64,000 bases of DNA, taken from contig JAAPAO010000107.1 in assembly GCA_013115145.1 (NCBI GenBank), positions 11,953-75,952 on the forward strand, read 5' to 3'. Of this stretch, positions 1 through 64,000 are shown in pieces (position 1 is the stretch's first letter; the number at the start of each line of letters is the position of its first letter). The notes under the pieces were generated by a model, which did no database searches, was not told where the DNA came from, and saw only the letters and a program-made list of their open reading frames with translations. This DNA comes from Perkinsus chesapeaki ATCC PRA-425. Its lineage: Eukaryota > Protista > Perkinsozoa. The position numbers and the translations under genes were made by a program.

Positions 1-3000
1 TGCCTCTCGGAATACTTCCATGGCATCTGAGTACTCATTAAAAATGTTTCCCATCCCACCTTCGATCGTTCCCTCTCTAAGTGACCAACAACACCCAATG
101 CCTCCATAGCCTGTCTCGCTATCATCGGGTTATCATCTCTTACCAAATCCAATATATAATGTACCACCTACAAACACGTCTCTTTGGTAGGCTGTCACGC
201 CATCCCAGTTAATTAGCGCGGCAAATCATCTTTTCGCTTTCCGTAAAGCGAGCTCATCTTCCTAAGGTGGCAAGGAGCGGATATTCCCCTATTCTCTCCC
301 TGTACAATACGATAGACTTTCCGGATCCTAGAGGCTTCGAAAGCAGTCTTACCAGCAAACCTCGGCAGCGAAGCAAGTTTCCTACCCTACCTGTCCGTCT
401 TGGTCCTCAAGGACAACCTCAGCTGTCTCCGAGTTGGACAGGAGCACAGTGAAGGTCCACAAGAGCTGCAGTACCTGCTCCCGCTTCTTGATATTGACCA
501 TCCTCATATGTCAGGTAATACTATCTCATCGTCCTCCTGTTTAGCTGTGAGCAGGTCCACTAAGCGCCTCAAGAGCAAAGGACTCTCACACAGTCTGGTG
601 CCAACCTCGGTGTCCGAGGATGCCGCCACTACCTGATACTTCTAACTCAGCTTCATAGAAAATATCGAAAATGAAATGATTATTAGAAGTTAAGGGATTA
701 TAACAAATGAAATGATTATTAGAAATGATATTTATAAAGAAATTAGAGGACTATTGTGAGATATTATAGGAGGATGATTCGAAATAAAAAATCACTAGAT
801 CCGAAAGAATTATCAGAAACAAAAGAATCAATAGTCCCTCCCCTGCCTACCCCAGCCACCATAATGCTCTGCAGCAACACATCGTCGCCTGTGAATCCTG
901 GTATAAGTTGCTGGGTGAGCAAGTCCAATAGGAAGCCATTATCATCCATCGAGCAAAGCTCTCCCCAATCAACTGTACCGGGACATGTGAAGTTTGCCAA
1001 CATGCCGAGTATCTTGGGATTCTCAATCACGAGCTCGCCTCATACACGCGGGGCAAGAAATAAGCATGCAGGTTGTTGCTAACACCTTCTAGTAGTCAGC
1101 AAGAGCTCTCGCAGCGAGTTTGACAATGTAATATATCACACCAGCTGCGTCTATCATATATTCCTACTTCCACAACTATTTCAGCGGCTCCATCGGCCTT
1201 CTCCTCCTTCCCTCCTGCCTTGCCACAACGACGCGCCATCCTAACCAACTCCGCTGCCCAATGAGATAAAGCCGTGCTGTTCATCACCTGCCAACCCCAT
1301 CAGTGATTTACCTTAGTTCCCCTTACATCACAGAAACGCTCTTGGAGCTCCTGCCCGTGGCTGCTCACATTTCGCATCACTTTCAGCACGAGAGGGTCAC
1401 GGAACTTGATAGCCCTGTGAACCTACCATGGGCCGGTATCATATCATTTCATATGTTCTTGCTTTACAGCGTTATATTATATATAATTATAACGTTACAG
1501 TATAATATTAATTAGATGTCGAAAGCACTTGGACAGCAAGTGAGTGCCTAGCTATCTCTTGTGGTGTATAAGGAGCACGAAACTCCTTACGATAGCGGAT
1601 TGGTTCGAACTACGTTCAACTATGCCGTAACGTTAATGTACGTTAACTTCTACATTAACCCATTCATTGATTATAACAACTACTGAGGATAATCGGTCAA
1701 CGGTTCCTCGATTCCTTCAACCCTATCAGCGATATCTGCTTACCAAATCTGGCCACAGGCCCGAGTCAAGCATAAGCCGTGAGCTTCTTTGATGCACTGA
1801 TAGATTCACCATGACCTACATCATCACTCACCGACCTCTATTCGCTAGCCAAACGCCTACTGCCATGAGATCGAGACCAACTCTCGGTTCGGGGAAGCCA
1901 ACTACGAGCTGGATTAGCATCGGTATGAAGTCTTGGCAGAAACACAGTTGGGATTTGCACCGATCATCGAACGAAAATTGATATCTGTCGATTTCGAAGT
2001 CGAGCAACAGTAGTGCCGGTGGCGGTACAGCAATCGAAGGACTAGCTGACGGCAGTTGGGCTGCTCTCTGAGGACGGTCACCAAAGTAGTAATAACGCCG
2101 CTCTCTGATAGGGCATCACGAACACCAGGATCGAAGGAGAGGTTATATAAAACCTAGGAAGAGGCAAATGAGTAGGGCCGAGAGGGCCTGTAGTGTGTAG
2201 TTTAACAATAAGAACCCATTAGGTGCGTGTAGTCTAACAATAAGAACCCGTTAGGTGCGTGTAGTTTAACAATAAGAACTCGTTAGGTGCGTGTAGTTTA
2301 ACAATAAGAACTCGTTATCCCCTGAATTTAGCCTTGTATTATAGAATCATTGCGGTGAGGTTGGTAATGCCTACATGAAGAGCCAACACGCCAACGGGGC
2401 TAGACTTGTACTGCAGCACACAGTTTGCTACCAATGGCCGAAGCACCTAAACACAACAACAACAACGAAGTGATGCTCCTTATCAGGATGAATAGTAATA
2501 GATAGGCCACCATTACTGTATCAGCAACACATCGTATAGATTAGGCTTCTACCAACCTAATCTATACGATGAGGAACCTCTACTATGACATAGGTAGCTG
2601 CCCAAGCAGATCAATACAGATATAAAGCCAATTACTTCCCCATACACTCACCCCAGCCTCGACCATTTGATCCTTAGCTTCACGGAATACCGACAGTTTC
2701 TTCATGAACACCAGACACACTTTAAGGAGTGGCTCCCAGGTCCGGTCCAAGAGACGGACTATCAACGATGGCAGCTTGCCATTAACCATTTTACCTGAGA
2801 ACCTGCAAGAATGACATCGGCGACCACTAGTGAAATATTCGCCGGCCCTCCTTCCTTCCACCATACAGAGTCGTCTTAATAAGGTGAGAGACATCGATTC
2901 TTTGCCTGTCCAAGGCGTACTTGGGCCCACGTAATATTTGACTCACGCTGTTCTACCGAACTACTCCTGATGTGAACCTGGTTATTGACTAAGATAATAT

Positions 3001-6000
3001 TAAAGTCGATATATAACAGTTATATAGATCATAACAATGTATAGAAAGTTGAACGAAGACGGAAGAAGACAGAAGGTATCTTCCCTTCATCCCCCCGTTT
3101 ACGAATACCCTTCCAACTCCCCCCCAGTAGCCCCACGTTCAACAGTGGCATCCTCAGCGAGATGCAATAAAGTTAACAATGCTATCCTCAGCAGCTTGTT
3201 TTGTTTCATAACCTTTCGCTCCTCTCTCGCAAGACCTGCTTGGTCTTGTGCTGCCCGGCATTCCTCTACCTAAGGACAAGGGGTCAATACATTACCAATG
3301 CGCCGTATAGGTAACAAAAATTCGCCCAGTTTCACCACTTTGTACGCACGTGGTCGCCTAGGACTGCTAAAAATTCTCCCGGAAACTAAACAGGATTCCG
3401 GTCAATTTTTACACTCCCAGCACTCTCAAACAATGTAGTTGATACGTGAGGGAATTCTATAGCACAACCGAGGCAGGCGGTCGAGAGGTATTCCAGTTTG
3501 AAATGTTGTCAGCTACCTTCCTGATCACCGCAATTTCCAACACCGCAGAGCAATACTATTCCCCTTCAGGAAGTCATCTAGTAGCATCACAGAAATGTGT
3601 TCCCGAGGGAGCAAAAACTTTTATTGCTGAAACACAGTAAGAATTCAGCTGTTGAATATTTTCATAAAGTTTAATATTTAAATATGCTCACAGACAGAAC
3701 GACCGCTACCCTCCCCCACCGTACCCCCTGCCTCAGGACCCTAGCCCTCTCCTGTACTTCATGGTCAACCAACTTGAGCGTAACTCCTCCACACTGTGAT
3801 GCTGACATTAATGGATGGAGGGACGTACAAGTGGACATACAGAGGAAGCAGGAACCTGAACTTCCCTAAAGCACCCTTCAACCTAAGATACGCTACTAAT
3901 TGCCGTGGGCAGATCAAAGAGCCCCATCGACTCCTCTCGTAACACCCTCGCCAGAACGGAAAGCCACGTGCCTGAAATGGATGCCCGCTTCCACGGCGGG
4001 CAAAGAAGCGATGTGAGCTCCTCGTCAAACGTCGAGCACTACAAGTTGCAGCCGCCAACGACAGTCATGAGCCTCTAATACAATTTCCAGTAGCCAGTGG
4101 TGAGTGGTAGATGCTGGACTACCGTAGGTAGTCTACCGTGGGAGCTTATACGAGAGCAATATCATCCGGGAGCCTCGGAGCCGGAGACTCGCTGATGAAG
4201 AACGGGCCATCTCGAGCTCACTCGATGGACCGTATGAATACGCATTTCACCACAATGCTGTCCCATTCAACGCGCGCTCAACTGCAACAAGCGGTATCCT
4301 ACTCTCCATCCCGCCAGCGTCAGCCCTATTGCCTCACGTCTACATCTTAAAAAGCTTTTTATAAGATCTACGATTGGATACATATTCGTAGAACACAATT
4401 TGTCTCGCATAAGAATATGTGTTATTCAATTTTGAAGCATTTCGAAAAGTCCCACTAAATAAAAGCCCAGTCACACTAAGCTAAAAATACTCGATCAAAT
4501 ATTGCTGAGTCGTTAGTCGTTACGCTACAAATACTAAATCAATTTGAGTCCCAATACCCTTAACACTCCCATTAAGACACACACATGACTCCGAATATTA
4601 TACCGACATTCCCTCCTTCCCCCGCCGCCGCCCCCGAGTAGTACAGTTGAATCCACCTTGCTCCCCTCCTGTAGCCATCGCCTCCTTACAAACATAGTCA
4701 AACGTCCGTGGATCTACACACAGCCTGACATACACGAAGATGCCACCGCCGTCGCCGGTGTTCCTGCTTCGTGGGGATGAGCACGTGCTAGTGAGGAGAC
4801 CGAAAGTCAACAGCAATCACAACTTGTACACAAAATTCAGCTCCCTCTAGTAGAGTACTGTACCGAATCACTGAGACTAGTCCAACTAGATGAACAATTC
4901 AGAACAAACCTCCTCGCCAGCGGCGGCTACGGCCCTGCTGCTGCTGCTTTACCGTAAAAAGCATCGTGCCCCTATGAGCTTCTCCTCAGGTGCATCCTCG
5001 TAAAGCATATCCTTATACCTAGTAAGACTCCCATCTGCAGCAGCTGCAGAGAGCTGAACTACTTCTCTGTGGCGTTCGGGCTCACGTCTGCTGGCAAGAG
5101 ACTGAATATCTGAAACGGCTACATTTAGATGACAGTCTTATACAAACGCAATAGTTAAGACATGAGCATTATGATAGAAGCTTCAACCTACTTGATAGCG
5201 TACAGGTTATACAAGCATGATAACATAACATGGTATAGAGTAAAAAAGAAAAATATGCTGAAAGTTCCAAGTCTCAGTCAGATGCCCCCGGAAGAATACG
5301 CGACAGGGTAACGATATCTCAACAAACACGGCGAGCAGAATACAAAAGCCGATAGCTCCGCAGCTTGACAGTTAGTTCACACGAAACCATAGCACCGCAG
5401 CCCTGCCACAGGAGTACCGTCAAAGTTACAAATAAACGGCTTTTTCCTGAAGTCCCGAACTTCGACTCGATTATTCTTTTTATTGTTTGAGCCCCACCGC
5501 GTTACTCTACAATGACAACTTTCCCGACACAATCCTCCTGTCCCCTCCCGAGAACTACAGCTTCATAATAACTCTTCGGAGATTCCTCCGCCAAACTCCT
5601 ATCCTGTCTACGAACACTTGACGGCCTTCTTGTCGTGCTCCTAGGCCTATCCAACGCAGATTGATGAGCCTTCAATGCAGTTAGTAGCCTAATGAGCTCA
5701 TCTCGCTGCTTTGGCAGTATGTACCTGAATCGCGGAGGCAACAGGGAGGCACCGGTAGCCGGGATACTTGTTCTCCATTAAGCAGTCGCCGAGTCAAAAT
5801 AGAACAAGTGATATTCAAACAACACAATGCTCTGAAACACCCCCAGGAACGGCGAAATCAAGGCAATCATTCTACATCCAAATGCTTCCACGAGATGGAC
5901 CAGATCACTTCAAAAACAGCAGACCAAGCAGACTCGATCAGCGATTGCCACCGACCCCTCAGCCATGGTGGCATCAGTAATGAAGACAAGCGTACGAGAG

Positions 6001-6480
6001 TGGTAATCCACCAGTACTCTCGGCACAAGGTATAAATATATTCACCCAAAAAGATCCAAAATCCCACTAAAAGAAATGCTTCTCCTTAAGAAATAAATGC
6101 ATTTGCGCTTGTGTCCCTAGTCTCTACTGAATATAGCACCATGATCACATCAACCTTCCGTAAATCTCTCCTACTTATTTGCCGCTTGCATCACTTGATC
6201 AGCTTTACCTTCGACGTTCGTCCCAACCTCCCGAAGCCGTACTGTCTTTTTACCTTTCAACAACGACGGCTTACAGAATCCCAAGTTCGAAATTCAACAC
6301 TTTTTCGAGACCGTTCTTTTTTGGAAAGTGATATGCCCTACCAGGTTGGCTCTCTACTGAGGTGACCCTATCCTGGTCGTCCATTGTAGAGACTTCTTGA
6401 GTGTAGTTAATAATAATTGTGCCTTCCTCTAGATTTGCCTCCAGCCCATTCGGGCGTATCTTTCGTACCGTTCGTGACAT
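1..6480 (-). CDS. KAP3: Kinesin-associated protein 3 (kinesin-II non-motor ARM-repeat subunit), multi-exon; 3' end runs off the window
   Basis: Minus-strand exon translations match KAP3 motifs in the expected order: MSRTVRKIRPNGLEANLEEGTIIINY (start 6480), YKDMLYED, LARVLREE, KQNKLLRIALLTLLHLAED, VFMKKLSVFREAKDQMVE, DDRCKSQ, RAIKFRDPLVLKVMRNVSSH, LGMLANFT, LLTAKQEDDEIV, YILDLVRDDNP. Matched from memory of the family. Confidence 0.85.
2195..2317. repeat. 32-bp tandem minisatellite (about 3.8 copies) in a KAP3 intron
   Basis: Unit gtgtagtttaacaataagaacYcRttaggtgc starts at 2195, 2227, 2259 and 2291, head-to-tail with no spacers. Confidence 0.95.
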
Positions 6481-6989
6481 TCCAACCTCAAATGAATTAC
6501 CCTTGTTTACTCAACACAACATCTGTCTCCTCCAAAGATATTCTGGCCGTTCTACGGGAAGAAAAGCAGAACTCGAGTACTTTGTAAAGGAAACCGACTC
6601 GTCTGGGATATCATCCAAACAAATCGAGCCTCGAATCTCATACCACACTTCCCTCAAATCTTCTGCACAGCAGAGAGACTTCAGGGAAGGTGTCCGATGA
6701 TAAAATTTCCCCAACATAAGCTTCCGCCGAGTAACGTGACGACAATAATTGATAGAGCAAACAATGGCGCCTTTACGGCCGCAAACGGACAACCGGCCCA
6801 GCAGCCACAGCGAGAAAATCATCCCTCAACGGATATAAATCCATAATGAGGAATTATGCCGTAGTTGCCCATAGCCGACTGTCCCAACTGAATCTGGATA
6901 TATATATAATTCGCCTCCGACTCACAGAGGCAATAGGAGATGGTAGGCCTGTTAAAAGTGGTGGGGCTCAGAGCAGATAGTAAAATTGT

Positions 6990-7859
6990 CTAGAGCGAAA
7001 TAACCATCGTGTTGTCGACGTCGCCGTCACCTCCTGGCAGCCTTTCCAATGTGCCGTCATCGAACGACTGCTGTGATGTCGAGTCGCTCGGGTCCTCCAT
7101 GGCGGGAATGTCGAAGGCGGCATTGACTCTAGATATAGTTCTAGCTGTGACCGGGCTTCCCTGGCTTGCGGAGTCGTCGACATTAGTAGTGGTGGATTGT
7201 GGTGGTGCTGGTGTTGTTGTTGTGGATATACCTTCCTCAATATCATGTTCTTCTTCAACATCAGTCATTTGTGAACGACATAATGGACATCTTAAAGATG
7301 ATAATACATCATCTCTCGATAATATTGGTAATCCTAAATAATTTGGTGCATACATTTTATCATAAGCAGTATCAATAACAGAATCAATACATTTCTCATG
7401 GAATATATGACCACATCGAAGTGTAATAAGTGATTCACCCATATCCTCTTCATCTAGACATATCGGACACAAATCCTCAGCGCCCGTCATCGTCGCCAAA
7501 GTGACCATAGAAGAGCTCTTCGCCACCGCCAAGAATGACTGCTTATCTTCAGGAGTCGGCACCCTCGATGACGCTGCCATAACCTCATCCGCCTCCTCGC
7601 CCGTCAGACCGAAATTCAGGTTGTGCATCGCTTGTTTAAAGCCGTACCTCCGAACCAACGTTCCGAAGAGGATGCCAAGTGGCAGCAAAATCCATATCAG
7701 ACCAACCGCAAAGATAATAATGAGGTCCGGAAAGGTCTTGTGGAGAACTGCAAATACAATAAAGGCAATTCCGACCACCACAAGACCCGCTATCCACACC
7801 CATTTGAATCTTCTTGGGAGTGCTAAGTCGATAAGAGTAGCATTACTTCTCTCTGTCAT
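6990..7859 (-). CDS. 2-TM RING-H2 E3 ubiquitin ligase-like protein (paralog 1)
   Basis: 289-aa intronless ORF with two N-terminal hydrophobic helices, then CPIC...CGHIFHEKC...CPLC (C3H2C3). Confidence 0.85.
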   Translation of the reverse strand: MTERSNATLIDLALPRRFKWVWIAGLVVVGIAFIVFAVLHKTFPDLIIIFAVGLIWILLPLGILFGTLVRRYGFKQAMHNLNFGLTGEEADEVMAASSRVPTPEDKQSFLAVAKSSSMVTLATMTGAEDLCPICLDEEDMGESLITLRCGHIFHEKCIDSVIDTAYDKMYAPNYLGLPILSRDDVLSSLRCPLCRSQMTDVEEEHDIEEGISTTTTPAPPQSTTTNVDDSASQGSPVTARTISRVNAAFDIPAMEDPSDSTSQQSFDDGTLERLPGGDGDVDNTMVISL

Positions 7860-8103
7860 TCACTAGTAAGCTTGTCAGTAGTACAATAGTAACAACAAAT
7901 CGCCTGCCAAACGACCTCAACAACAACCGAATGCATCTCGTTGCGAAACAGAGCCCAATTCCCCATCTGCCTTTCCCTTCCATGTCCACTCAAGAGAATC
8001 GGCACATGCAGTCTCCCGGAGTTCACGGAATATTTTTCCCGAACGCAGTGACCAACTTCCATGTCCATGAAGGCCCGCAACACGTTTTAACGATGTGAAG
8101 CAC

Positions 8104-8663
8104 TCAGAAATGTTTTCCCTTGCCCTTATTGAGACCAGGATTACACTGCGCACGCTCAAGCGAATATGCTGCGAAATTCCGGTCATTCCCTGTCCTCCCA
8201 AGAAGCATAAATATATGAGTAAAATGCATCAGGAAATTCAAGTTCACCGACGAAGCTAGACTAAAGAGCAGCATAAATCCATCCGCCCCCCGGGGCAACA
8301 ACAACATTACGACGTCTTGGAAAGTAACTTTGAGGAATTCACTAACGTAGACACAAATAGTAACGACGATGGCTTCCTTGTTGCCGGGGAACCAAGTTTC
8401 ATCGGTCCCTCGGGCCATCATCAGCAACAGCAAAGGTACTGCCTTCGCTAAGGTATAGCGAACAGAGTGGTACGACCGAGAGCTGTTCGAGCTGTGGTGC
8501 GACCTTCTACACTAAAGAGACGGGAATGTAGAACAGGTGGCCACGATATAATCGACTGGAAGAGTACAGGACAGTATATATAGGCAAGATGGCCTGTGAT
8601 GGAAATACAGAAGTATAGAATAATAACAGATAAGACCAACTTGGTAGCAGCATCTTTGCTCAC
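8104..8663 (-). pseudogene. Possible frameshifted or decaying multi-TM membrane protein
   Basis: Two hydrophobic ORFs (8448-8663, 8104-8433) abut in different frames. No family recognised. Confidence 0.25.
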
Positions 8664-8816
8664 TAATAAGGGAAAGACACTCCTTTAATATGGCCTTCGG
8701 TATGGCAGCGCCAATTCCAGCAGCAAACCCCCGATCTTCAGGGAATCGCCACGACGGGCTGCTGCATCAATACCTCAGGCCAACAACTAGAAATTGCTGA
8801 GGGCCAACTACATTGT

Positions 8817-9620
8817 CTAGAGAGCGACAACAGGCTCCCGACGAGGAGGGGCTTCGCCCACTCTCTCACCAGAAAGATAGAATGCAGGAGGAACTCTGGC
8901 GAGCGGCGGACTGCTGTACACTTCAGCGGGTATATCATCGACATTGGTAGTGGTGGATTGTGGTGCTGGTGGTGTTGTTGTTGTGGATATACCTTCCTCA
9001 ATATCATGTTCTTCTTTAACATCAGTCATTTGTGAACGACATAATGGACATCTTAAAGATGATAATACATCATCTCTCGATAATATTGGTAATCCTAAAT
9101 AATTTGGTGCATACATTTTATCATAAGCAGTATCAATAACAGAATCAATACATTTCTCATGGAATATATGACCACATCGAAGTGTAATAAGTGATTCACC
9201 CATATCCTCTTCATCTAGACATATCGGACACAAATCCTCAGGAGCTGTAGAGGTATCCAAGGTAACCCTAGAGGCGCTCTTAGCTGCCGCCAAGAACGCC
9301 TTCTTGTCCTCTTCAGTGGGAGTCTGACAGGCATCAGTCCTCGGTTCAATCCTGGGACCCACTCGGAGCTTCCTCATTCCCTCACGGAGCCCATACTTCC
9401 TCGTCATCTTCACCAGCAGAACTGCCAACGGCATTAGGATCCACAACAGGGCCACCGCGAAGGCAATAATGAGACCGGGGAAGGTTTGGTGCATTGCAGC
9501 GAGGACAATGAAGGCCATAGTGATGACGAACACACCGGCAAGCCAGACCCAACGGAAATGCCTAGGCAGCGATACTTCCATTATTGTATCGTCTTCAGCT
9601 GGTTGACGGTTTTCGGACAT
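8817..9620 (-). CDS. 2-TM RING-H2 E3 ubiquitin ligase-like protein (paralog 2)
   Basis: 267-aa ORF with the same architecture. The RING region is nearly identical in DNA to paralog 1. Confidence 0.85.
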   Translation of the reverse strand: MSENRQPAEDDTIMEVSLPRHFRWVWLAGVFVITMAFIVLAAMHQTFPGLIIAFAVALLWILMPLAVLLVKMTRKYGLREGMRKLRVGPRIEPRTDACQTPTEEDKKAFLAAAKSASRVTLDTSTAPEDLCPICLDEEDMGESLITLRCGHIFHEKCIDSVIDTAYDKMYAPNYLGLPILSRDDVLSSLRCPLCRSQMTDVKEEHDIEEGISTTTTPPAPQSTTTNVDDIPAEVYSSPPLARVPPAFYLSGERVGEAPPRREPVVAL

Positions 9621-52535: not shown

Positions 52536-53762
52536 TCTACGTGGTTATGAGTTAAACTATGAACGACTCAACTCTACAGAACTTCTGTTTGCTCAGAAGT
52601 AGATCGACCGGAAGTCTGTGTACCTGGCAGGCAGAAAACTACCTTAAACAATTGAATTGCAAGTGGCAGGAAAACCGCACATCTTAGATTTGAACGCGCG
52701 GGTCATCACTGACGCAACCACGACACAATACTACTGAGAAGGAAACCGATCCGAAATCGGTACCTCACCAAAAGAGAAGATGATTACACGTGAGGAGATC
52801 CTACACAGTAGGATTCATAGCTATAGTGTAAGCTCCAAATTGTGGGTCTTCAGCCGGTTGTTTGCATGTGTGCTGCGATTCGTAGTCCGCTACTTGTGAG
52901 TTTATATGACCTTTCATTCGTATGAGGGTCCTTTGCTGTGACACCAGCGCGGTTGTGACCGTTTAGTTGTCGCTGTTCGGTGGTATCATATAAATGCACG
53001 CATACGCAGTATGCTGTATGCGCGCGGTCTGCCAATGTATTGAACTGGCTGTGCTTGTAGTAATGGTTGTAGTAGACTACTACACTACTACCACTACTAC
53101 TAGTAGTGGTTATAGTAAGTCGATTAGACCGCCCTTGATACTATATGTAATTATCATTCGGGGTATATGGCAGGTGGCGAGGCTAAGATACCTCCAAAAT
53201 ATGAACAGCGATTTCCTGGTTGTACGCGTCCCACTTGACGCAATGTAGCGAGCATCGACACATAACCTTATTTACTGTAGGCCCTTAATGAGGGTCGTAA
53301 CTACTTATCCCCAAGAACTTCTGAATAGCCCCCGGTGGGTTGCCACCGCTCATATCGTCTTTATGGCTTATCATGTATTAGAGCACGTAGTAGGAATGAG
53401 TACCCGATTGGGGTTCTCACACCGCACGTGTACCACCACCAGTGGAGCGCGCCCCTTCCTAATCACTTGAGCGCGGGGCCTCTCCATAAGCTACGCGGAA
53501 CTCGTGAAACCTGATCAATTGTGCTTGATAGTCGAGTCCTGGCTTCCAGTCCGGGCAGAGGGTTTTCTTAGGTTTTGTTGATAGTGGATCGTGAGGTTTC
53601 TTCTTATCCTTAGTTGTCTCGTCTCTCACTTGTGTTTGAGACGTGGCTCTTATCATCCCCAAACTGAAACTCCATCTTCTTTAACCAAGTCTGACACGGT
53701 GGCTAGAACAATAGTACTCTTTTCGGAGGCTTTTCATGAGTTCGGTCGAATAGGCGTAGGTG

Positions 53763-53915
53763 TGTGAAGAGTTGTGTATTGCTGTCTCCCATTAAATTGT
53801 GTAGTGTCCCTTAGCTGATATTTTAGCTATGACAATATCGATCAACTAAGCCCTCCAGTTCATATATCTGTATATATACTTATCTCCTTAAACCCTTTGT
53901 CTAGAGTTATTTACA
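53763..53915 (+). repeat. 5' LTR (153 bp)
   Basis: TGTGAAG...TTTACA; identical by eye to 58537-58689. Confidence 0.97.
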
Positions 53916-53917
53916 TC

Positions 53918-53927
53918 TGGTAGCAGC
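53918..53927 (+). promoter_or_regulatory. Primer-binding site, probably initiator tRNA-Met
   Basis: TGGTAGCAGC lies 2 nt after the LTR and is complementary to a tRNA 3' end ...CUGCUACCA, as in eukaryotic tRNA-iMet. Confidence 0.8.
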
Positions 53928-53933
53928 TCCTCT

Positions 53934-54767
53934 ATGTCGACCTCTTCAACAACCCGTGGTGTACTGCATCCTCCAACTTATGAATTTGGTGAAGACTTTT
54001 CTATATGGGCTGAGCGTTTCAAGCTAATTCTGAAGGTGAATAACTTTGATGAGGCTAAAGGCATAAAGTTGTTACCTTTATATTTGGACCCAACTACTTA
54101 TTCTATTTATAGAGAGTTAGCTGGTTCTGGCGAACCTCAAAGTCTTGGGGAAGCTATCAAAGGACTTTCGATAGCTTTGAGACCAAGAACAGCAACTACA
54201 TGGTTATCCTTCACACACCAGAAAATGCACCCTAAGGAACATCCTATGGACTTTGCTACTCGACTTCGACATATGGCGACTGACCTGATGCCTGGTTTAA
54301 ACAGCACCGAGCGTGACGAACTATGTACTCATCAATTTTTGGCCGGTATCCCCGCTGACTATGCGCGTGTCTTGAGTAACGAAACTTCACAGTTGAAGCT
54401 CTTTGATGCTGCACAGCGAGTACAACAACTCCTTGGTCTAGATGAAGCTAGACTACGTGCTGATTCAACACCAAATGCTGCGGAGCTCCTTGGTTTGCCG
54501 AATACAGAGGAGGCTGATCCTATGTTATCAGAAAATGATCTGGCAGCAATGTCCGAACCGCCAGCCACTGTATCTATGATTAAGTCTGATGGTAATTCCC
54601 ATTTGAACTCTGTTATATGTCATCGGTGCGGTCGCCCAGGTCATTATGCACGAGACTGCCGTATGGATAGGTCTATTGTATGCCGGAAATGTGGTAAAAG
54701 AGGCCATGTTAGCCGAGCTTGCCGTTCTCTCAATAAACAGGGAAACGGACGAGGGGAGGCTCAGTAG
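53934..54767 (+). CDS. gag: Gag with two CX2CX4HX4C zinc knuckles
   Basis: 277 aa with CHRCGRPGHYARDC and CRKCGKRGHVSRAC. Confidence 0.92.
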   Translation: MSTSSTTRGVLHPPTYEFGEDFSIWAERFKLILKVNNFDEAKGIKLLPLYLDPTTYSIYRELAGSGEPQSLGEAIKGLSIALRPRTATTWLSFTHQKMHPKEHPMDFATRLRHMATDLMPGLNSTERDELCTHQFLAGIPADYARVLSNETSQLKLFDAAQRVQQLLGLDEARLRADSTPNAAELLGLPNTEEADPMLSENDLAAMSEPPATVSMIKSDGNSHLNSVICHRCGRPGHYARDCRMDRSIVCRKCGKRGHVSRACRSLNKQGNGRGEAQ

Positions 54768-56773
54768 GCTGTGAAGCTCTCCCCGTTACTTCATTATCTT
54801 GTTGTTTTGCAAGTTATACAGCCTTATTACCACATATTCAAGTACAGATATCTTCTCATATATTGGTGGCACTGGTAGATTCTGGTTCGGTAGTTTCACT
54901 ACTATTAGAGGATGTCTTCTTGAAGAACTATCCGAATGTTTCTCTATGTCCTTCTCCACAACAATTGGTAACTGCAGATGGTCAACAGTTCAAGACATTA
55001 GGAACTGTTAGTCTACCTATAGAAATTGGTAATGATAGTTACTCCTTACGGTTCTATGTAGTTCCAGAACTCCCAGCAAAAGTCATTCTTGGAGCAGATT
55101 TCCTTCGACTGTCAAGATCGTCCCTTGACTTTTCGAAGTCAACATTAACTACTGGTTGTCGGTCTTGTCTACACTTTGTCCCTGACGGTCAAGTCGAAGT
55201 CCAGAATAAAGTCCTAAATGTAATTGATGAAACACAGAAGTCCATATATGATGATCGTCAAATATCTGTCTATCGAGAATCGTCTGGCCGATTCTCTGTC
55301 TCCTGGCATTGGTCTTGTACACCCCCTACGTCACAAGCTAGTCCTGAACCTTTCCTGTCACGATTGGATTCTCAACATCAACAATTCTTTCACGATCAAG
55401 TAGAGTACTACATTAAGCACGGCATCATCGAGGAGATTTCCCCGACAACATTAACATCATATGGTTCTGATTGCAACTTCTTAAAATGGTTTGGAGTTGC
55501 CCAAAAGTCGTCGTCTACACCTTCTCGTCCGATTTGGGATTTTCGTCCTATAAATGAATGTATCTACCATGGCCCTATGAAACAACAATTACTTAGTCAA
55601 CTCCAACAACAACTACGACTTGGCTCTACAATTATAGCTATTGATATATCCAAAGCTTTTTTGGCTATATCTCTACAACCCTCTTTACGACGGTATACCC
55701 TATTCAGGTACAAATCACGGATATACCAACATAAAAGATTAGGCTTTGGAGCCTCTTGTGCTCCACACGCACTAGAAGTGTGTTTTCGCTTACTATTTCA
55801 AGAAGTTGGTTTACATGAACGCCTACGAGAAGGAGGATGGCAACTCATTCAATACATGGATGATCTATTTCTAGTTACACTGGTACCTTGTCCTTCTATG
55901 TCCCCGTCTACTGCTACAAATTTGGTCCTTTCAGTTCTAGCAAAAGCTTTATTCGAAGCACAACCTAAGAAGACTTCGTTCTTAACAGCTACGAAGACTA
56001 AGTGTTTGGTACTTCAAGGCAAGGAGGAGATAGTAGCAAAAGAACAAGCTCAAATGGTTGGTGTGTTTTATAACAAGAAGGATGGTATCGTCTATTATCC
56101 AGCTGTGACTCTGAGAAGGTTTGACTCATCTAAAGACCAACTTACTCGTAGAAAGCTTCTGGGAGTAGTATCCAAGTTGCGTGATCCTCTATTGATACGA
56201 CCACTTTGTAATGTTGTAACTAATTACTTAAAGCATTTAATTGGTTCTATTAACTATGATTGGGATACTATATTTACAGTAGAAGAGTCAAAGCTATGGT
56301 CTGACCGCTTAGAACGACTTCAGCAGATAAATGAAGTGGCATCTTCCACTGCATTGGGATGTCTTCCGCATTCAGGAATTTTGGTTATATATGTTGATGC
56401 GTCTACTAGTGGATTCTCTTGGTTAGCTTATGCTGGTACTAACCCTTCGGATCTATCTTATATAGGAGGAGAGTATGGTATATGGCCTGCTAAACATCAA
56501 GGTAAACACATAAATTACCTTGAGCTTTTAGCATCAGTTCGAGCTTGTAATTATGCTGATAGTCATTATGTTCAAACCTTTTATCCGTCATCTATTTATC
56601 ATGTTGTAGATTCGCAGACTTGCTATCGACAACTTATTTCTGGACGAGCCCATCAAGCTTCTCATAGTGCAGCACTTTGTCAACGACAACTAAGTTATTA
56701 TAGTGAACTTGTATCCGACCCTCATTGGCGACTTTATAACATTGTATTGGTGCCTACTAAAGATAATATATGA
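54737..56773 (+). CDS. pol: Pol, first part: aspartic protease, reverse transcriptase, RNase H
   Basis: ALVDSGS, ILGADFL, RPIWDFRPIN, DISKAF, QYMDD, RRKLLGVVSKLRDPL, YVDAS, ELLA, VDS; ends at an in-frame TGA. Confidence 0.92.
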   Translation, partial: TGKRTRGGSVGCEALPVTSLSCCFASYTALLPHIQVQISSHILVALVDSGSVVSLLLEDVFLKNYPNVSLCPSPQQLVTADGQQFKTLGTVSLPIEIGNDSYSLRFYVVPELPAKVILGADFLRLSRSSLDFSKSTLTTGCRSCLHFVPDGQVEVQNKVLNVIDETQKSIYDDRQISVYRESSGRFSVSWHWSCTPPTSQASPEPFLSRLDSQHQQFFHDQVEYYIKHGIIEEISPTTLTSYGSDCNFLKWFGVAQKSSSTPSRPIWDFRPINECIYHGPMKQQLLSQLQQQLRLGSTIIAIDISKAFLAISLQPSLRRYTLFRYKSRIYQHKRLGFGASCAPHALEVCFRLLFQEVGLHERLREGGWQLIQYMDDLFLVTLVPCPSMSPSTATNLVLSVLAKALFEAQPKKTSFLTATKTKCLVLQGKEEIVAKEQAQMVGVFYNKKDGIVYYPAVTLRRFDSSKDQLTRRKLLGVVSKLRDPLLIRPLCNVVTNYLKHLIGSINYDWDTIFTVEESKLWSDRLERLQQINEVASSTALGCLPHSGILVIYVDASTSGFSWLAYAGTNPSDLSYIGGEYGIWPAKHQGKHINYLELLASVRACNYADSHYVQTFYPSSIYHVVDSQTCYRQLISGRAHQASHSAALCQRQLSYYSELVSDPHWRLYNIVLVPTKDNI
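54740..54784 (+). promoter_or_regulatory. -1 ribosomal frameshift signal (G GGA AAC plus stem-loop)
   Basis: The slippery heptamer is in the gag frame and is followed by a 6-nt spacer and a hairpin ggggag...ctcccc. The pol frame is -1 and open from 54737. Confidence 0.8.
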
Positions 56774-58588
56774 GACCGAGGAACTCGACTAGACCCAATA
56801 ATACAGTATCTTCTAATTGGTAAATCTACTCTTAAAATTGATGATATCTTGTATTATACAGCCCCTGATGTACTTTCAGTTCAACAATTTCGAGAAGTTC
56901 AACAACTATTAGATGCTGGGTCTTCTAAAGAAGTTACATCAGAAGTGACAGAAAGCCCTTCTATAAAACTATGTAATGATAGCACAAAATCTACTAATTG
57001 TGGGAAATTGAGTGGTGTCATATCATTTATTGGTAGTGACCAGCCAGTTACATTGGAAGCTATTAAACAATCCCAAAGAGAAGATCCAGTATGTTCGGTA
57101 TTATACCAAAAAGTTGAAGGTCAAAAACCCTGGGTATTACAAGATGCAGCTCCTGAGGAACTACAGAAATATGCAAAATATCAAACAGATATTAAGTTAT
57201 CCAGTGGTTTGTTGGTACGACATTATGCACCTTATCCCTATTTTGAACCAATCGATATTCCCATGATACCCTTGTCATTAAGACAGAGATTATTATCCAG
57301 TGTACATAATGATGGTCACTTCAGTGGAGATACCCTCTATGACACATTGGTGAAGTTATGTTTTTGGCCAACACTGAGATCTGATTGTATATTGTTTGTT
57401 AAGAAATGTCCAGCATGCACATTGAGAAAAAGATCAGTTTCCCCGGCACCTCTTTATATACATTATGCGACAAGACCTTGGCAAGTGGTTTCTGTTGACT
57501 TTCTTACTATAGATGGGAAGAAACTGCTAACGATGTGCTGTCATTTCAGCAAATGGGCAGTGGCAGTTATGGTCCCTGATGAGACATCTACTACTACTCT
57601 TGGTACTATATCTCGTATCTTTTATGCTTATGGAGTGCCAGATACAATGGTTAGTGACCGTGGTAAGAGTTTTGATAATGATATGTATCGAGAACAGTTA
57701 AATCAGTATGGTGTAATAGCAAGATATTCTTCTGTTGCACATCCAGCAAGTAACGGTCAAGTAGAAAGGTTCCATCGAGTCCTATTGGATCGTATTGAAT
57801 CATACTTGATTATGACTACCAATGGAAATTGGACTCAAGCTTTACCGAAGTTGGTTTATCAGTATAATATTGCTAAGCAGAGCTCCATTGGTATAACGCC
57901 TTTCGAGGCTATGTTTGGAAGACGCCCTCATTATCCTTATCTTCAATTACCACAACGGATGCATAATACTGGACCACACGATGAAGTACATGCAACTATT
58001 ATAGATTATGTTAATGGTCAGTTAGTGAAGGCAAAATCTGCTTATCAAAGGCAGTTTAATAAGAAGACTAAAGTTCCCCAAGATATACCACAAGGCTCTC
58101 CGGTTTTGGTGTATTTCGATTCTATACGTTCTAAGCTACTAACTCATTGGAGAAGAGGATTTACATGTTTGAAGAAACTCGGCCCGGTAACTTATAGTAT
58201 ATGTGTGAATCAAACTGGTCATACTTTTACGTGTCACGTGAATCGTCTACGATTAGATGAAGCTGATTTGTCACTGATTCCTACAAGCTGTAGACGTCAA
58301 CCACTACGAGCACATACATGTATGTCTACCTCAACCACAAAGCCTACTCCAGAGAAGTGGTTTCCTATATCTGATGAAGTTGATAATGATGATTTTAATA
58401 CTGTTCAAGACGGTCAACAACATCGTGTTCAAGTAAATGAAGATATGCGTCGTATATCAACTAGATATGGAAGAACCATCCGTAAACCTAATCGCTATGG
58501 TTACGATAATACTTCACCTCTCAAGGAGGGGAAAATTGTGAAGAGTTGTGTATTGCTGTCTCCCATTAAATTGTGTAGTGTCCCTTAG
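56774..58588 (+). CDS. pol: Pol, second part: integrase, in the same frame after a single TGA
   Basis: HNDGH...CPAC zinc motif, SVDFL, VSDRG, SNGQVERF, TPFEAMFGR, LGPVTY...HVNRL. Confidence 0.9.
   Translation, partial: DRGTRLDPIIQYLLIGKSTLKIDDILYYTAPDVLSVQQFREVQQLLDAGSSKEVTSEVTESPSIKLCNDSTKSTNCGKLSGVISFIGSDQPVTLEAIKQSQREDPVCSVLYQKVEGQKPWVLQDAAPEELQKYAKYQTDIKLSSGLLVRHYAPYPYFEPIDIPMIPLSLRQRLLSSVHNDGHFSGDTLYDTLVKLCFWPTLRSDCILFVKKCPACTLRKRSVSPAPLYIHYATRPWQVVSVDFLTIDGKKLLTMCCHFSKWAVAVMVPDETSTTTLGTISRIFYAYGVPDTMVSDRGKSFDNDMYREQLNQYGVIARYSSVAHPASNGQVERFHRVLLDRIESYLIMTTNGNWTQALPKLVYQYNIAKQSSIGITPFEAMFGRRPHYPYLQLPQRMHNTGPHDEVHATIIDYVNGQLVKAKSAYQRQFNKKTKVPQDIPQGSPVLVYFDSIRSKLLTHWRRGFTCLKKLGPVTYSICVNQTGHTFTCHVNRLRLDEADLSLIPTSCRRQPLRAHTCMSTSTTKPTPEKWFPISDEVDNDDFNTVQDGQQHRVQVNEDMRRISTRYGRTIRKPNRYGYDNTSPLKEGKIVKSCVLLSPIKLCSVP
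58523..58535 (+). promoter_or_regulatory. Polypurine tract
   Basis: AAGGAGGGGAAAA lies 1 nt before the 3' LTR. Confidence 0.9.
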
Positions 58589-58689
58589 CTGATATTTTAG
58601 CTATGACAATATCGATCAACTAAGCCCTCCAGTTCATATATCTGTATATATACTTATCTCCTTAAACCCTTTGTCTAGAGTTATTTACA
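58537..58689 (+). repeat. 3' LTR (153 bp)
   Basis: Identical to the 5' LTR and followed by the TSD GGTG. Confidence 0.97.
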
Positions 58690-58732
58690 GGTGTATTTTT
58701 GCCTGATGATTGATGATTTATTTCAGCTTTCG

Positions 58733-59847
58733 ATGAGGTTCTTTGTATTATGTCTGGTGGCTTTGTCCAACCTCCTTCTATCAGCTGTCAGAGTCCCAAC
58801 AGCCAAGCTAAATCAGTATGTTGATAAAGTCCATCAGGCTTGGATAGACACCTATAAGAAGCAGAACCCTAGAAACCCTCAGCGTATAAAACTAGAGCTG
58901 AAGAATACTAGAGGCCAAGTGAAGTGGGTGAATCCAGGGGATACTGTCTCAGGTTACAGTCCCACTGGAAAGAGGATTGACCTTGTTCAAGTAAGCCACA
59001 CCCGGTATGAACCCCGTATTTTTCCGGTCAGACGAAGGGATCAGCTTTACCCGCTCAATTTAAAGAAGCTATTGAAAATACTGGCCGCCTTCTGTACATG
59101 GTCATGCGTCAACCTACTGCAGAAGTGAGTCGTGATTTTTTCTGACCCCCTGAAACTACTTAGACTTCATTCGCCAGTAGTTCGTAGAGCAACCAGGAGC
59201 AAAAATCATCACGATCTGCTTTCTTCCTCCCGGTGGTTCAAGATGCTGTTCATTTCCCTGTGCAGGTGTATGCTAACCTGATGCATGAAAGACGGCTGAG
59301 AAATAACCCTGGGCTCAAGACAACCCAACCCAGGCTCTTCGTGAACTATGAGAAGCTCACCGAGAAGCAGAAGATAGAAGCTCGCAGCCTTGTCACTGCG
59401 CGCGTGCGTGCCGCTCTCGCACGTCAACCTATTGCAGAAGTAAGACGTCGTGTATTTCTCGCAGCCTCTGGAACGACTTGAGAGATGAGCTTCAACCAAC
59501 CTAGAGTTCTTTTTACAACAAGAGGGTAAATCTATCACGATGTGTGAAGATTTCTCCTGAGTATTGTTATCACGGATGTGATATAGCGTGTAGTTGACGA
59601 AGTTTACGCCTTCTCCAGTCGGGCTGGATTAGAGGAGTGTGATCTGTTTGATCTCTTGGTGGTTTGAGATGATCTTTATTTCCCTTTGCAGGTTTATGCC
59701 AGCCTAGTTCATGAAAGATGGATGAGAGCGAATCCTTGGATGCACCAATCTCAACCTGAACTCTTCGTGGACTATGAGAAACTCACCGAGTTGGAGAAGG
59801 ATAAAGATCGTCATTTTGTTGATGTCGCTAAAGCCTTATTCAAGTAG
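58733..59847 (+). CDS. Secreted ~226-aa protein with RyR-like repeats, four exons
   Basis: Exons 58733-58990, 59032-59124, 59266-59439 and 59692-59847 all join in phase 0. Signal peptide MRFFVLCLVALSNLLLSA; repeats VH..W...P.LFV.YEKL.E.EK..DR. Confidence 0.7.
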
Positions 59848-63624: not shown

Positions 63625-63766
63625 TTACAATCCTACTCCCGTTACAATCGAACCCCCGTTACAATCCACACCCAGCTTAAAATCCACACCCCGTTTACAA
63701 TCCACACCCGGCTTAAAATCCACACCCCGCTTACAATCCACACTCCCGTTACAATCCAATTCCCAA
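63625..63766. repeat. 17/18-bp tandem repeat (8 copies, ttaMaatccacaccc..)
   Basis: Units start at 63625, 63642, 63659, 63677, 63695, 63713, 63731 and 63749. Confidence 0.9.
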
Positions 63767-63780
63767 AGCCAAGAAAAAAA

Positions 63781-63860
63781 CCCCGATTGCCCGATAATAA
63801 CCCTGATTGCCCGATAATAACCCTGATTGCCCGATAATAACCCTGATTGCCCGATAATAA
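63781..63860. repeat. 20-bp tandem repeat, 4 copies (ccctgattgcccgataataa)
   Basis: Direct reading; one substitution in copy 1. Confidence 0.95.
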
Positions 63861-63882
63861 CCTCGATACAGGTAACCCCCGA

Positions 63883-64000
63883 ACACCCGAACTGTTATAA
63901 AGGTAAACCCGAAACCCGAACTGTTATAAAGGTAAACCAGAAACCCGAACTGTTATAAAGGTAAACCAGAAACCCGAACTGTTATAAAGGTAAACCAGAA
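63883..64000. repeat. 29-bp tandem repeat, at least 4 copies (aaacccgaactgttataaaggtaaaccag), runs off the window
   Basis: Units start at 63883, 63912, 63941 and 63970. Confidence 0.95.

Follow-up and report, generated by a model that had tools for sequence, protein, structure and literature searches.

The DNA analysed here, referred to as the window, is a stretch of 64,000 nucleotides (nt) from contig JAAPAO010000107.1 of Perkinsus chesapeaki ATCC PRA-425 (assembly GCA_013115145.1). Positions 43934-64000 of the window match the final 20 kb of this contig with 100% identity. The window harbours a long terminal repeat (LTR) retrotransposon of 4927 bp at positions 53763-58689. The host of this element is not an animal but an alveolate (Perkinsozoa), a parasite of oysters and clams. 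The generic parts of an LTR retrotransposon are all found: direct LTRs bounded by TG and CA, a short target-site duplication (TSD), a putative primer-binding site, a polypurine tract, a gag gene, and protease (PR), reverse transcriptase (RT), RNase H (RH) and integrase (IN) domains (Table 1). Pfam matches in the element are to zf-CCHC (twice), RVT_1, Integrase_H2C2 and rve, and Retrotrans_gag had no Pfam match in it. The G+C content is 39.8% in the element, 34.6% in the LTR and 47.6% in the rest of the window. No tRNA gene was found in the window. A first-pass annotation of this DNA had described an LTR retrotransposon with identical LTRs and a 4-bp TSD, in agreement with our coordinates. The motifs that it quoted are also visible in the translations, namely two CX2CX4HX4C knuckles, the LVDSGS/ILGADFL protease, the RT/RNase H and integrase strings, and a GPY/F-like tail, which reads as GPxxY-like in the integrase.

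Table 1. Features of the LTR retrotransposon, in window coordinates.
Feature	Position	Strand	Remarks
Left TSD, GGTG	53759..53762	.	same 4 bases directly abut both LTRs
5' LTR, 153 nt, TG..CA	53763..53915	+	100% identity to 3' LTR
Putative primer-binding site, TGG start, 2 bases past 5' LTR	53918..53933	+	read from sequence; length uncertain
gag, 277 aa, intact; two CCHC knuckles at ~54615-54725	53934..54767	+	zf-CCHC 44 bits, 2 stretches
Slippery heptamer GGGAAAC, gag register, within 31-nt gag/pol overlap; proposed -1 frameshift site	54740..54746	+	
Stem-loop, 6 nt 3' of heptamer	54748..54787	+	-17.4 kcal/mol, z only -1.0; weak evidence
pol (PR-RT-connection/RNase H-IN), -1 frame relative to gag	54740..58588	+	ends 52 nt into 3' LTR
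Aspartic protease domain (DSG)	54863..55207	+	gag-asp_proteas 21.5 bits, under cut-off
Reverse transcriptase (YMDD)	55340..56062	+	RVT_1 3e-13
RT connection and RNase H, PF05380-modelled type	56063..56860 (bounds approximate)	+	PF05380 24.2 bits
Integrase, whole	57251..58288	+	Integrase_H2C2 4.5e-12, rve 2.6e-11, Integrase_p58_C weak
Integrase, H2C2 finger	57266..57433	+	
Integrase, DDE core	57470..57745	+	
Integrase, C-terminal SH3-like/GPY-type part	~58169..58252	+	
Polypurine tract AAGGAGGGGAAAA, 13 nt, one base ahead of 3' LTR	58523..58535	+	read from sequence
3' LTR, 153 nt	58537..58689	+	100% identity to 5' LTR
Right TSD, GGTG	58690..58693	.	abuts 3' LTR

The pol frame opens upstream of the gag stop, and the heptamer GGGAAAC falls within the resulting overlap. 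A sibling locus in Perkinsus olseni (L001, contig JABANM010026882.1) carries the identical heptamer in the identical register at 1256-1262, and its pol frame likewise opens just upstream. The two loci have no overall similarity at the DNA level, yet the heptamer has been kept. L001 also folds into a matching, similarly placed stem with one compensatory pair. Neither stem-loop is better than shuffled sequences (z of -1.0 in the window and -0.2 in L001), and both were retained for their position and the compensatory pair, so that the argument for frameshifting is carried by the heptamer and its conservation. Gag-pol is thus probably expressed via -1 ribosomal frameshifting at GGGAAAC. The primer-binding site of the window element was not found conserved in L001, the 5' end of which looks different or truncated.

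Mechanistically, the element is an ordinary mobile element. By analogy, transcription would proceed from the 5' LTR, Gag would be translated directly and Gag-Pol by the -1 frameshift, and reverse transcription would be primed at the TGG-type primer-binding site and the polypurine tract. The DDE integrase would then insert the copy and generate the 4-bp duplication.

All catalytic motifs that were looked for are present in the pol translations. The pol frame contains one in-frame stop, and neither a frameshift nor a large indel relative to the P. olseni siblings. These siblings read through the homologous region, so the stop is either damage to this copy or a mistake in the assembly, and not a conserved signal. 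With this stop the copy is not fully intact, and on its own it would not yield full-length Pol. The absence of differences between the LTRs (0/153 nt) bounds their divergence only to below about 2% (95%). The very recent activity proposed in the first-pass annotation is plausible in view of the identical LTRs, but it is weakly constrained, since the LTRs are short and pol carries a stop; the insertion is likely young, with an age that is not tightly constrained.

In GenBank, the element sits within a spliced 'hypothetical protein' model (P0012). The gene model FOL47_000442 (522 aa; window 53934-59847, corresponding to L002 10001-15914) takes the gag ATG as its start codon, crosses the element by splicing and continues beyond the 3' LTR; a retrotransposon has here been annotated in error as a host gene. 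Given this mis-annotation of the element, a repeat library with the family in it is needed for Perkinsus genomes, whose genes are investigated as parasite factors in diseases of shellfish.

Relatives of the element were sought with a HMMER scan of 1.84 billion representatives, using the upstream open stretch of pol as query. Three hits were below 1e-30, two of which were traced to Perkinsus, and the rest formed a long tail at ∼25-27% identity. Heading this tail is a genuine BEL/Pao protein that carries DUF1759 and scores 292 bits for PF05380; the next hits carry the Pfam domain DUF7047 (PF23088), and gypsy and DIRS proteins are also among the hits. Cluster look-ups provided siblings from P. 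olseni with 52-75% identity to the window element. These are KAF4695770.1 (P0254; gag and PR-RT-RH), KAF4676739.1 (P0251; RH and IN in one protein) and KAF4696219.1 (P0252; gag and RT-RH). The locus L001 is a further P. olseni sibling. A sibling fragment is present in P. chesapeaki itself (KAF4648008.1, P0017). The siblings represent subfamilies different from that of the window element, and are annotated in GenBank only as 'hypothetical protein'. Family members are collinear for gag, PR, RT, a PF05380-type RH and IN, with 44-75% identity within Perkinsus; the window gag is 65-75% identical to P. olseni gag. Sibling copies with the same mosaic of domain affinities, a search for which had been proposed in the first-pass annotation, are therefore present in P. 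olseni, and whatever made this mosaic is old. The domain combination, common to diverged copies in two Perkinsus species, is an old trait.

The sibling locus L001 contains, at 1391-4366, one continuous pol open reading frame (ORF) of 991 aa that lacks ∼240 aa of the connection/RNase H region, which makes it an internally deleted but open copy. Host contamination was rejected as a source of the window element, which lies inside a 76-kb Perkinsus contig between Perkinsus-type genes and has relatives in several Perkinsus assemblies.

The domains were compared one by one with three classes of elements. Reference sets of full-length proteins were built from the hits (17 BEL/Pao, 18 gypsy and 11 from the DUF7047 group) and were thereby chosen by similarity to the query. 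The PR, RT, RT-to-IN and IN regions were excised, and the window domains were aligned with each class profile by hhalign, the open stretches of the window being kept separate. RT scored 160 against BEL/Pao, 120 against the DUF7047 group and 97 against gypsy, and the connection/RNase H region followed the same order (105, 76 and 28, the last not significant). The order differs for PR, which scored 78 against the DUF7047 group, 69 against gypsy and a non-significant 24 against BEL/Pao, and for IN, which scored 276 against gypsy (320 columns), 233 against the DUF7047 group and 60 against BEL/Pao. The proposed leaning of RT/RNase H towards BEL/Pao, and of PR and IN towards the Ty3/gypsy type, is thus borne out.

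Calibration put these scores in perspective. Held-out or leave-one-out members scored 240-680 against their own class, with lower values for PR, and cross-class scores were ∼10-260, mostly <130, the highest being DUF7047-group IN against the gypsy profile. Members of BEL/Pao reached 148-247 for PR, 306-460 for RT, 306-562 for RT and RH, and 493-685 for IN; held-out gypsy members reached 239-431 for RT and 321-527 for IN; and DUF7047-group members reached 344-585 for RT and RH. The best scores of the window element were 78-276 depending on the domain. Against BEL/Pao, its RT-RH scores roughly double the cross-class baseline. Its IN score approaches those of members in the gypsy and DUF7047 groups, and against BEL/Pao it stays at the baseline, with gypsy IN domains at 57-107 there. 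As true members score higher against their own class, the element fits into none of the three, consistent with the deep-branching lineage suggested in the first-pass annotation.

The class order was unchanged when three or four family members were combined into a profile that took the place of the window. With this family profile, scores against BEL/Pao and the DUF7047 group were 167 and 133 for RT, and 119 and 89 for RH. PR scored 94 against the DUF7047 group, its scores of 24-25 against BEL/Pao being not significant, and IN ranged over 233-321 against the DUF7047 group across the window and the family profile. The RH of the P. chesapeaki fragment P0017 scored 119 against BEL/Pao, 65 against the DUF7047 group and 17 against gypsy, and the BEL/Pao leaning of RT-RH recurs in four independent family members. 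Starting from the window PR, an iterated search recruited PRs of gypsy and the DUF7047 group and no BEL/Pao PR. The IN-region search with the 991-aa P. olseni pol ORF, which was word-limited, returned only gypsy-type proteins. Gag had been called gypsy-like, but its CCHC knuckles are generic, and the gag body without the knuckles matches only the gag of the DUF7047 group (E 1.4e-11, hhalign); it had no significant hhalign match to BEL/Pao gag or to gypsy gag.

Pfam models gave a similar picture. PF05380, the 'Pao retrotransposon peptidase' of Pfam, has a cut-off of 22.3 bits; it scored 24.2 bits when the connection/RNase H segment was taken by itself and 21.3 bits when the whole stretch was used. 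The siblings gave 35.7 (P0017), 23.5 (P0254), 20.8 and 18.3 bits. True BEL/Pao references have 111-162 bits for PF05380, and carry DUF5641 in five of five cases and DUF1759 in four of five; neither of these two domains had a Pfam match in the window element. The gypsy RNase H models (PF17917, PF17919) had no match in the connection/RNase H segment at E<=1. Setting PF05380 against the gypsy RNase H models, a check that had been suggested beforehand, turned out negative for gypsy, with PF05380 scores on either side of the cut-off and far below those of true members. The zinc-binding H2C2 finger of the integrase is not gypsy-specific, being also found in the true BEL/Pao references. Among solved structures, the best relative of IN is the Ty3 Gag-Pol (PDB 7q5b; 1.1e-22), and PR matches the DDI1 retropepsin (1.7e-3). 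The RT-RH stretch and its family profile matched no solved structure in the PDB, Ty3 Gag-Pol included, at E<=0.01.

Another reading is that a true BEL/Pao element entered Perkinsus by horizontal transfer from its mollusc host, as Perkinsus lives in bivalves. The best non-Perkinsus match of PR-RT-RH is, as noted, a genuine BEL/Pao protein, and the G+C content of the element is lower than that of its surroundings. However, the identity to any BEL/Pao protein does not exceed ∼25-27%, DUF1759, DUF5641 and a BEL/Pao-type PR are absent, the members of the family within Perkinsus have diverged to 44-75% identity, and the family falls outside a BEL/Pao clade that is monophyletic at 99-100% in our trees. 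We regard this origin as very improbable, and recent transfer from an animal was rejected on these grounds. With BEL/Pao (Belpaoviridae) the element shares the domain order, the H2C2 finger, the best class for RT and connection/RNase H, and the marginal PF05380 match. It differs in the absent domains just mentioned, in an IN at baseline, in its alveolate host and in the length of its LTR. BEL/Pao has been reported only from metazoans (PMC3118150), and its LTRs measure 0.2-1.2 kb (PMC3118150), longer than the 153 nt found here. Searches for literature on BEL/Pao outside animals, on Perkinsus LTR elements and on DUF7047 retrieved no paper in the searchable part, which is no proof of novelty.

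The DUF7047 group is exemplified by a protein of the sponge Sycon ciliatum (XP_065182549.1, P0099) and by the loci L003 and L004 from ENA assemblies. Its elements resemble the window element in PR-RT-RH-IN order, in significantly similar gag body, PR and IN, in a size of ∼5 kb with TG..CA ends and a 4-bp TSD, and in a connection domain that begins like PF05380. In contrast, their gag and pol are fused into a single ORF and their LTRs measure 400-700 nt, where the window element has a -1 frameshift and 153-nt LTRs, and the RT and RH of the window score far under their member level. The 4-bp TSD had been set against the 5 bp typical of BEL elements. L003 also has a 4-bp TSD, and in the Wicker classification TSDs of 4-6 bp are known from all LTR superfamilies, so TSD length does not discriminate.

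The L003 element (2566-7727, eukaryote assembly ERZ26858995) has 400-nt LTRs with TG..CA ends that are 100% identical, a TSD of GGAC and one gag-pol ORF of 1393 aa, and looks as young as the Perkinsus copy. In P0017, residues 86-137 give a weak DUF7047 match and, on the same residues, a match to the first ∼50 positions of PF05380. It thus looks as if DUF7047 covered the N-terminal portion of the connection domain modelled by PF05380, and as if elements of the DUF7047 group had the PF05380-type start of that domain as well.

Phylogenetic trees were built by neighbour-joining with 200-300 bootstraps and two distance measures; they are coarse, with saturated distances and references picked by similarity, and are indicative only. 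On RT alone, the family groups with BEL/Pao in 65-70% of bootstraps, and a position as sister to BEL/Pao gets 50-70% depending on the data set; with gypsy it groups in 1-10% across data sets. When RT and RH are combined and siblings included, support for the partner of the family is divided between BEL/Pao (50-54%) and the DUF7047 group (46%), gypsy receiving 1-4%. On IN, it joins a six-member subgroup of the DUF7047 group in 80-84% and BEL/Pao in 0%, and the gypsy and DUF7047 groups intermix. By score, the domains do not all favour one known superfamily, RT-RH and IN differing in their best class.

A second deep LTR lineage was observed in the same genome, represented by a P. chesapeaki protein of 1717 aa (KAF4672182.1, P0023). 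A CCCH finger, a gypsy-like IN and borderline matches to gypsy RNase H are found in it, and in RT-RH trees it frequently comes out as the closest single neighbour of the family (26-59% of bootstraps).

We hold with moderate confidence that the window contains an almost intact, recently inserted copy of a Perkinsus-specific family of compact LTR elements. This family would form a deep PR-RT-RH-IN branch that is neither BEL/Pao nor crown Ty3/gypsy, with the DUF7047 group as its nearest overall relatives, and its mosaic would stem from unequal divergence. Gag, PR, IN and the 4-bp TSD would be shared with the ∼5-kb elements of the DUF7047 group, known from S. ciliatum and environmental eukaryote assemblies, and the PF05380-type connection/RNase H would be common to the family, the DUF7047 group and BEL/Pao. 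The best hits would then disagree because the gag, PR and IN of BEL/Pao are strongly derived and the RNase H region of gypsy is of another type, and no recent module swap would be needed. RT-RH is nearly tied between BEL/Pao and the DUF7047 group, and gag, PR and IN point to the latter, so recombination is not required. A third, deep lineage placed between gypsy and BEL/Pao is the simplest explanation of these data. The young chimera of BEL/Pao and gypsy proposed in the first-pass annotation is not supported, the mosaic being old.

Several observations weigh against descent by unequal divergence. For RT and for RH, BEL/Pao consistently outscores the DUF7047 group, the RT trees favour BEL/Pao, and these trees are as coarse as stated. 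Against BEL/Pao, IN does no better than any gypsy IN, and DUF7047 itself had no Pfam match in the window. If taken at face value, the conflict between the RT-RH and IN scores is a true signal of incongruence.

This conflict is what an ancient modular recombinant would leave behind, in which the RT-connection-RNase H block came from a BEL/Pao-related lineage and gag, PR and IN were kept from a DUF7047/gypsy-like lineage, for example through template switching between co-packaged RNAs. Such an origin is possible rather than probable, and because the RT and RH scores favour BEL/Pao so consistently, ancient module exchange stays a serious rival. The RT and RH scores best against BEL/Pao stand beside PR, IN and gag scores best against the gypsy and DUF7047 groups; bootstrap support for joining BEL/Pao drops from the RT to the IN tree; and Ty3 Gag-Pol is found by IN at 1e-22 and missed by RT-RH. 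On the other hand, RT-RH with siblings is nearly tied between BEL/Pao and the DUF7047 group, and the BEL/Pao branch is so long in IN, PR and gag that a sister relation could be invisible there. Moreover, no donor lineage was found, the best BEL/Pao match being only 26% identical, and any recombination predates the split of the subfamilies common to P. chesapeaki and P. olseni.

Alternatively, the DUF7047 group and the Perkinsus family could both be unusual clades of Ty3/gypsy in the wide sense, with the BEL/Pao leaning of RT-RH as noise of weak, saturated similarity. Ty3/gypsy (Metaviridae; Ty3, PDB 7q5b) does share with the window element the domain order, a retropepsin, and an integrase with H2C2 finger, DDE core and C-terminal domain. 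The IN score against gypsy is just under that of held-out members, Ty3 is its best solved relative, and the intermixing of the gypsy and DUF7047 groups in the IN tree and the marginal PF05380 scores of 21-24 bits are also consistent with such a placement. We nevertheless find it unlikely, given an RT that is far below gypsy members and joins gypsy in few bootstraps, an RNase H region with no match to PF17917 or PF17919 and no significant hhalign score against gypsy, and the lack of Retrotrans_gag. Furthermore, PF05380 exceeds its cut-off in the window segment, P0017 and P0254, and the same RT-RH leaning occurs in four independent family members.

Tentatively, the Perkinsus family and the DUF7047 group may constitute a non-animal sister lineage of BEL/Pao, in which ancestral gypsy-like gag, PR and IN are found beside a BEL/Pao-type RT-RNase H. 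If so, the BEL/Pao polymerase module would be older than animals, and a superfamily regarded as metazoan-only would have protist relatives. In a variant of this reading, the RT-RH block would have been exchanged long ago between lineages in the parasite and its invertebrate hosts. The classification of LTR retrotransposons (copia, gypsy, BEL/Pao and retroviruses) rests mainly on animals, plants and fungi, and a well-preserved family from Perkinsozoa that lies between gypsy and BEL/Pao offers an anchor for rooting BEL/Pao. It also allows asking if the PF05380 connection/RNase H, the DUF1759 gag and the DUF5641 tail were acquired stepwise or by module exchange.

The genes that neighbour the element are intron-poor, and encode subtilase, SET-MYND, phosphodiesterase and RING proteins. 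A parasite protease gene cluster occupies positions 24600-47400 of the window, with at least six intron-poor subtilase (Peptidase_S8) paralogues on both strands and 65-83% identity at the DNA level. Two RING-finger ORFs (6990-7859 and 8817-9620, within 6990-9620) have a 300-nt stretch in common at 98% identity, indicating a probable recent local duplication. Three adjoining minisatellites, with periods of 18/54, 20 and 29, are located at 63625-64000, at the very end of the contig.

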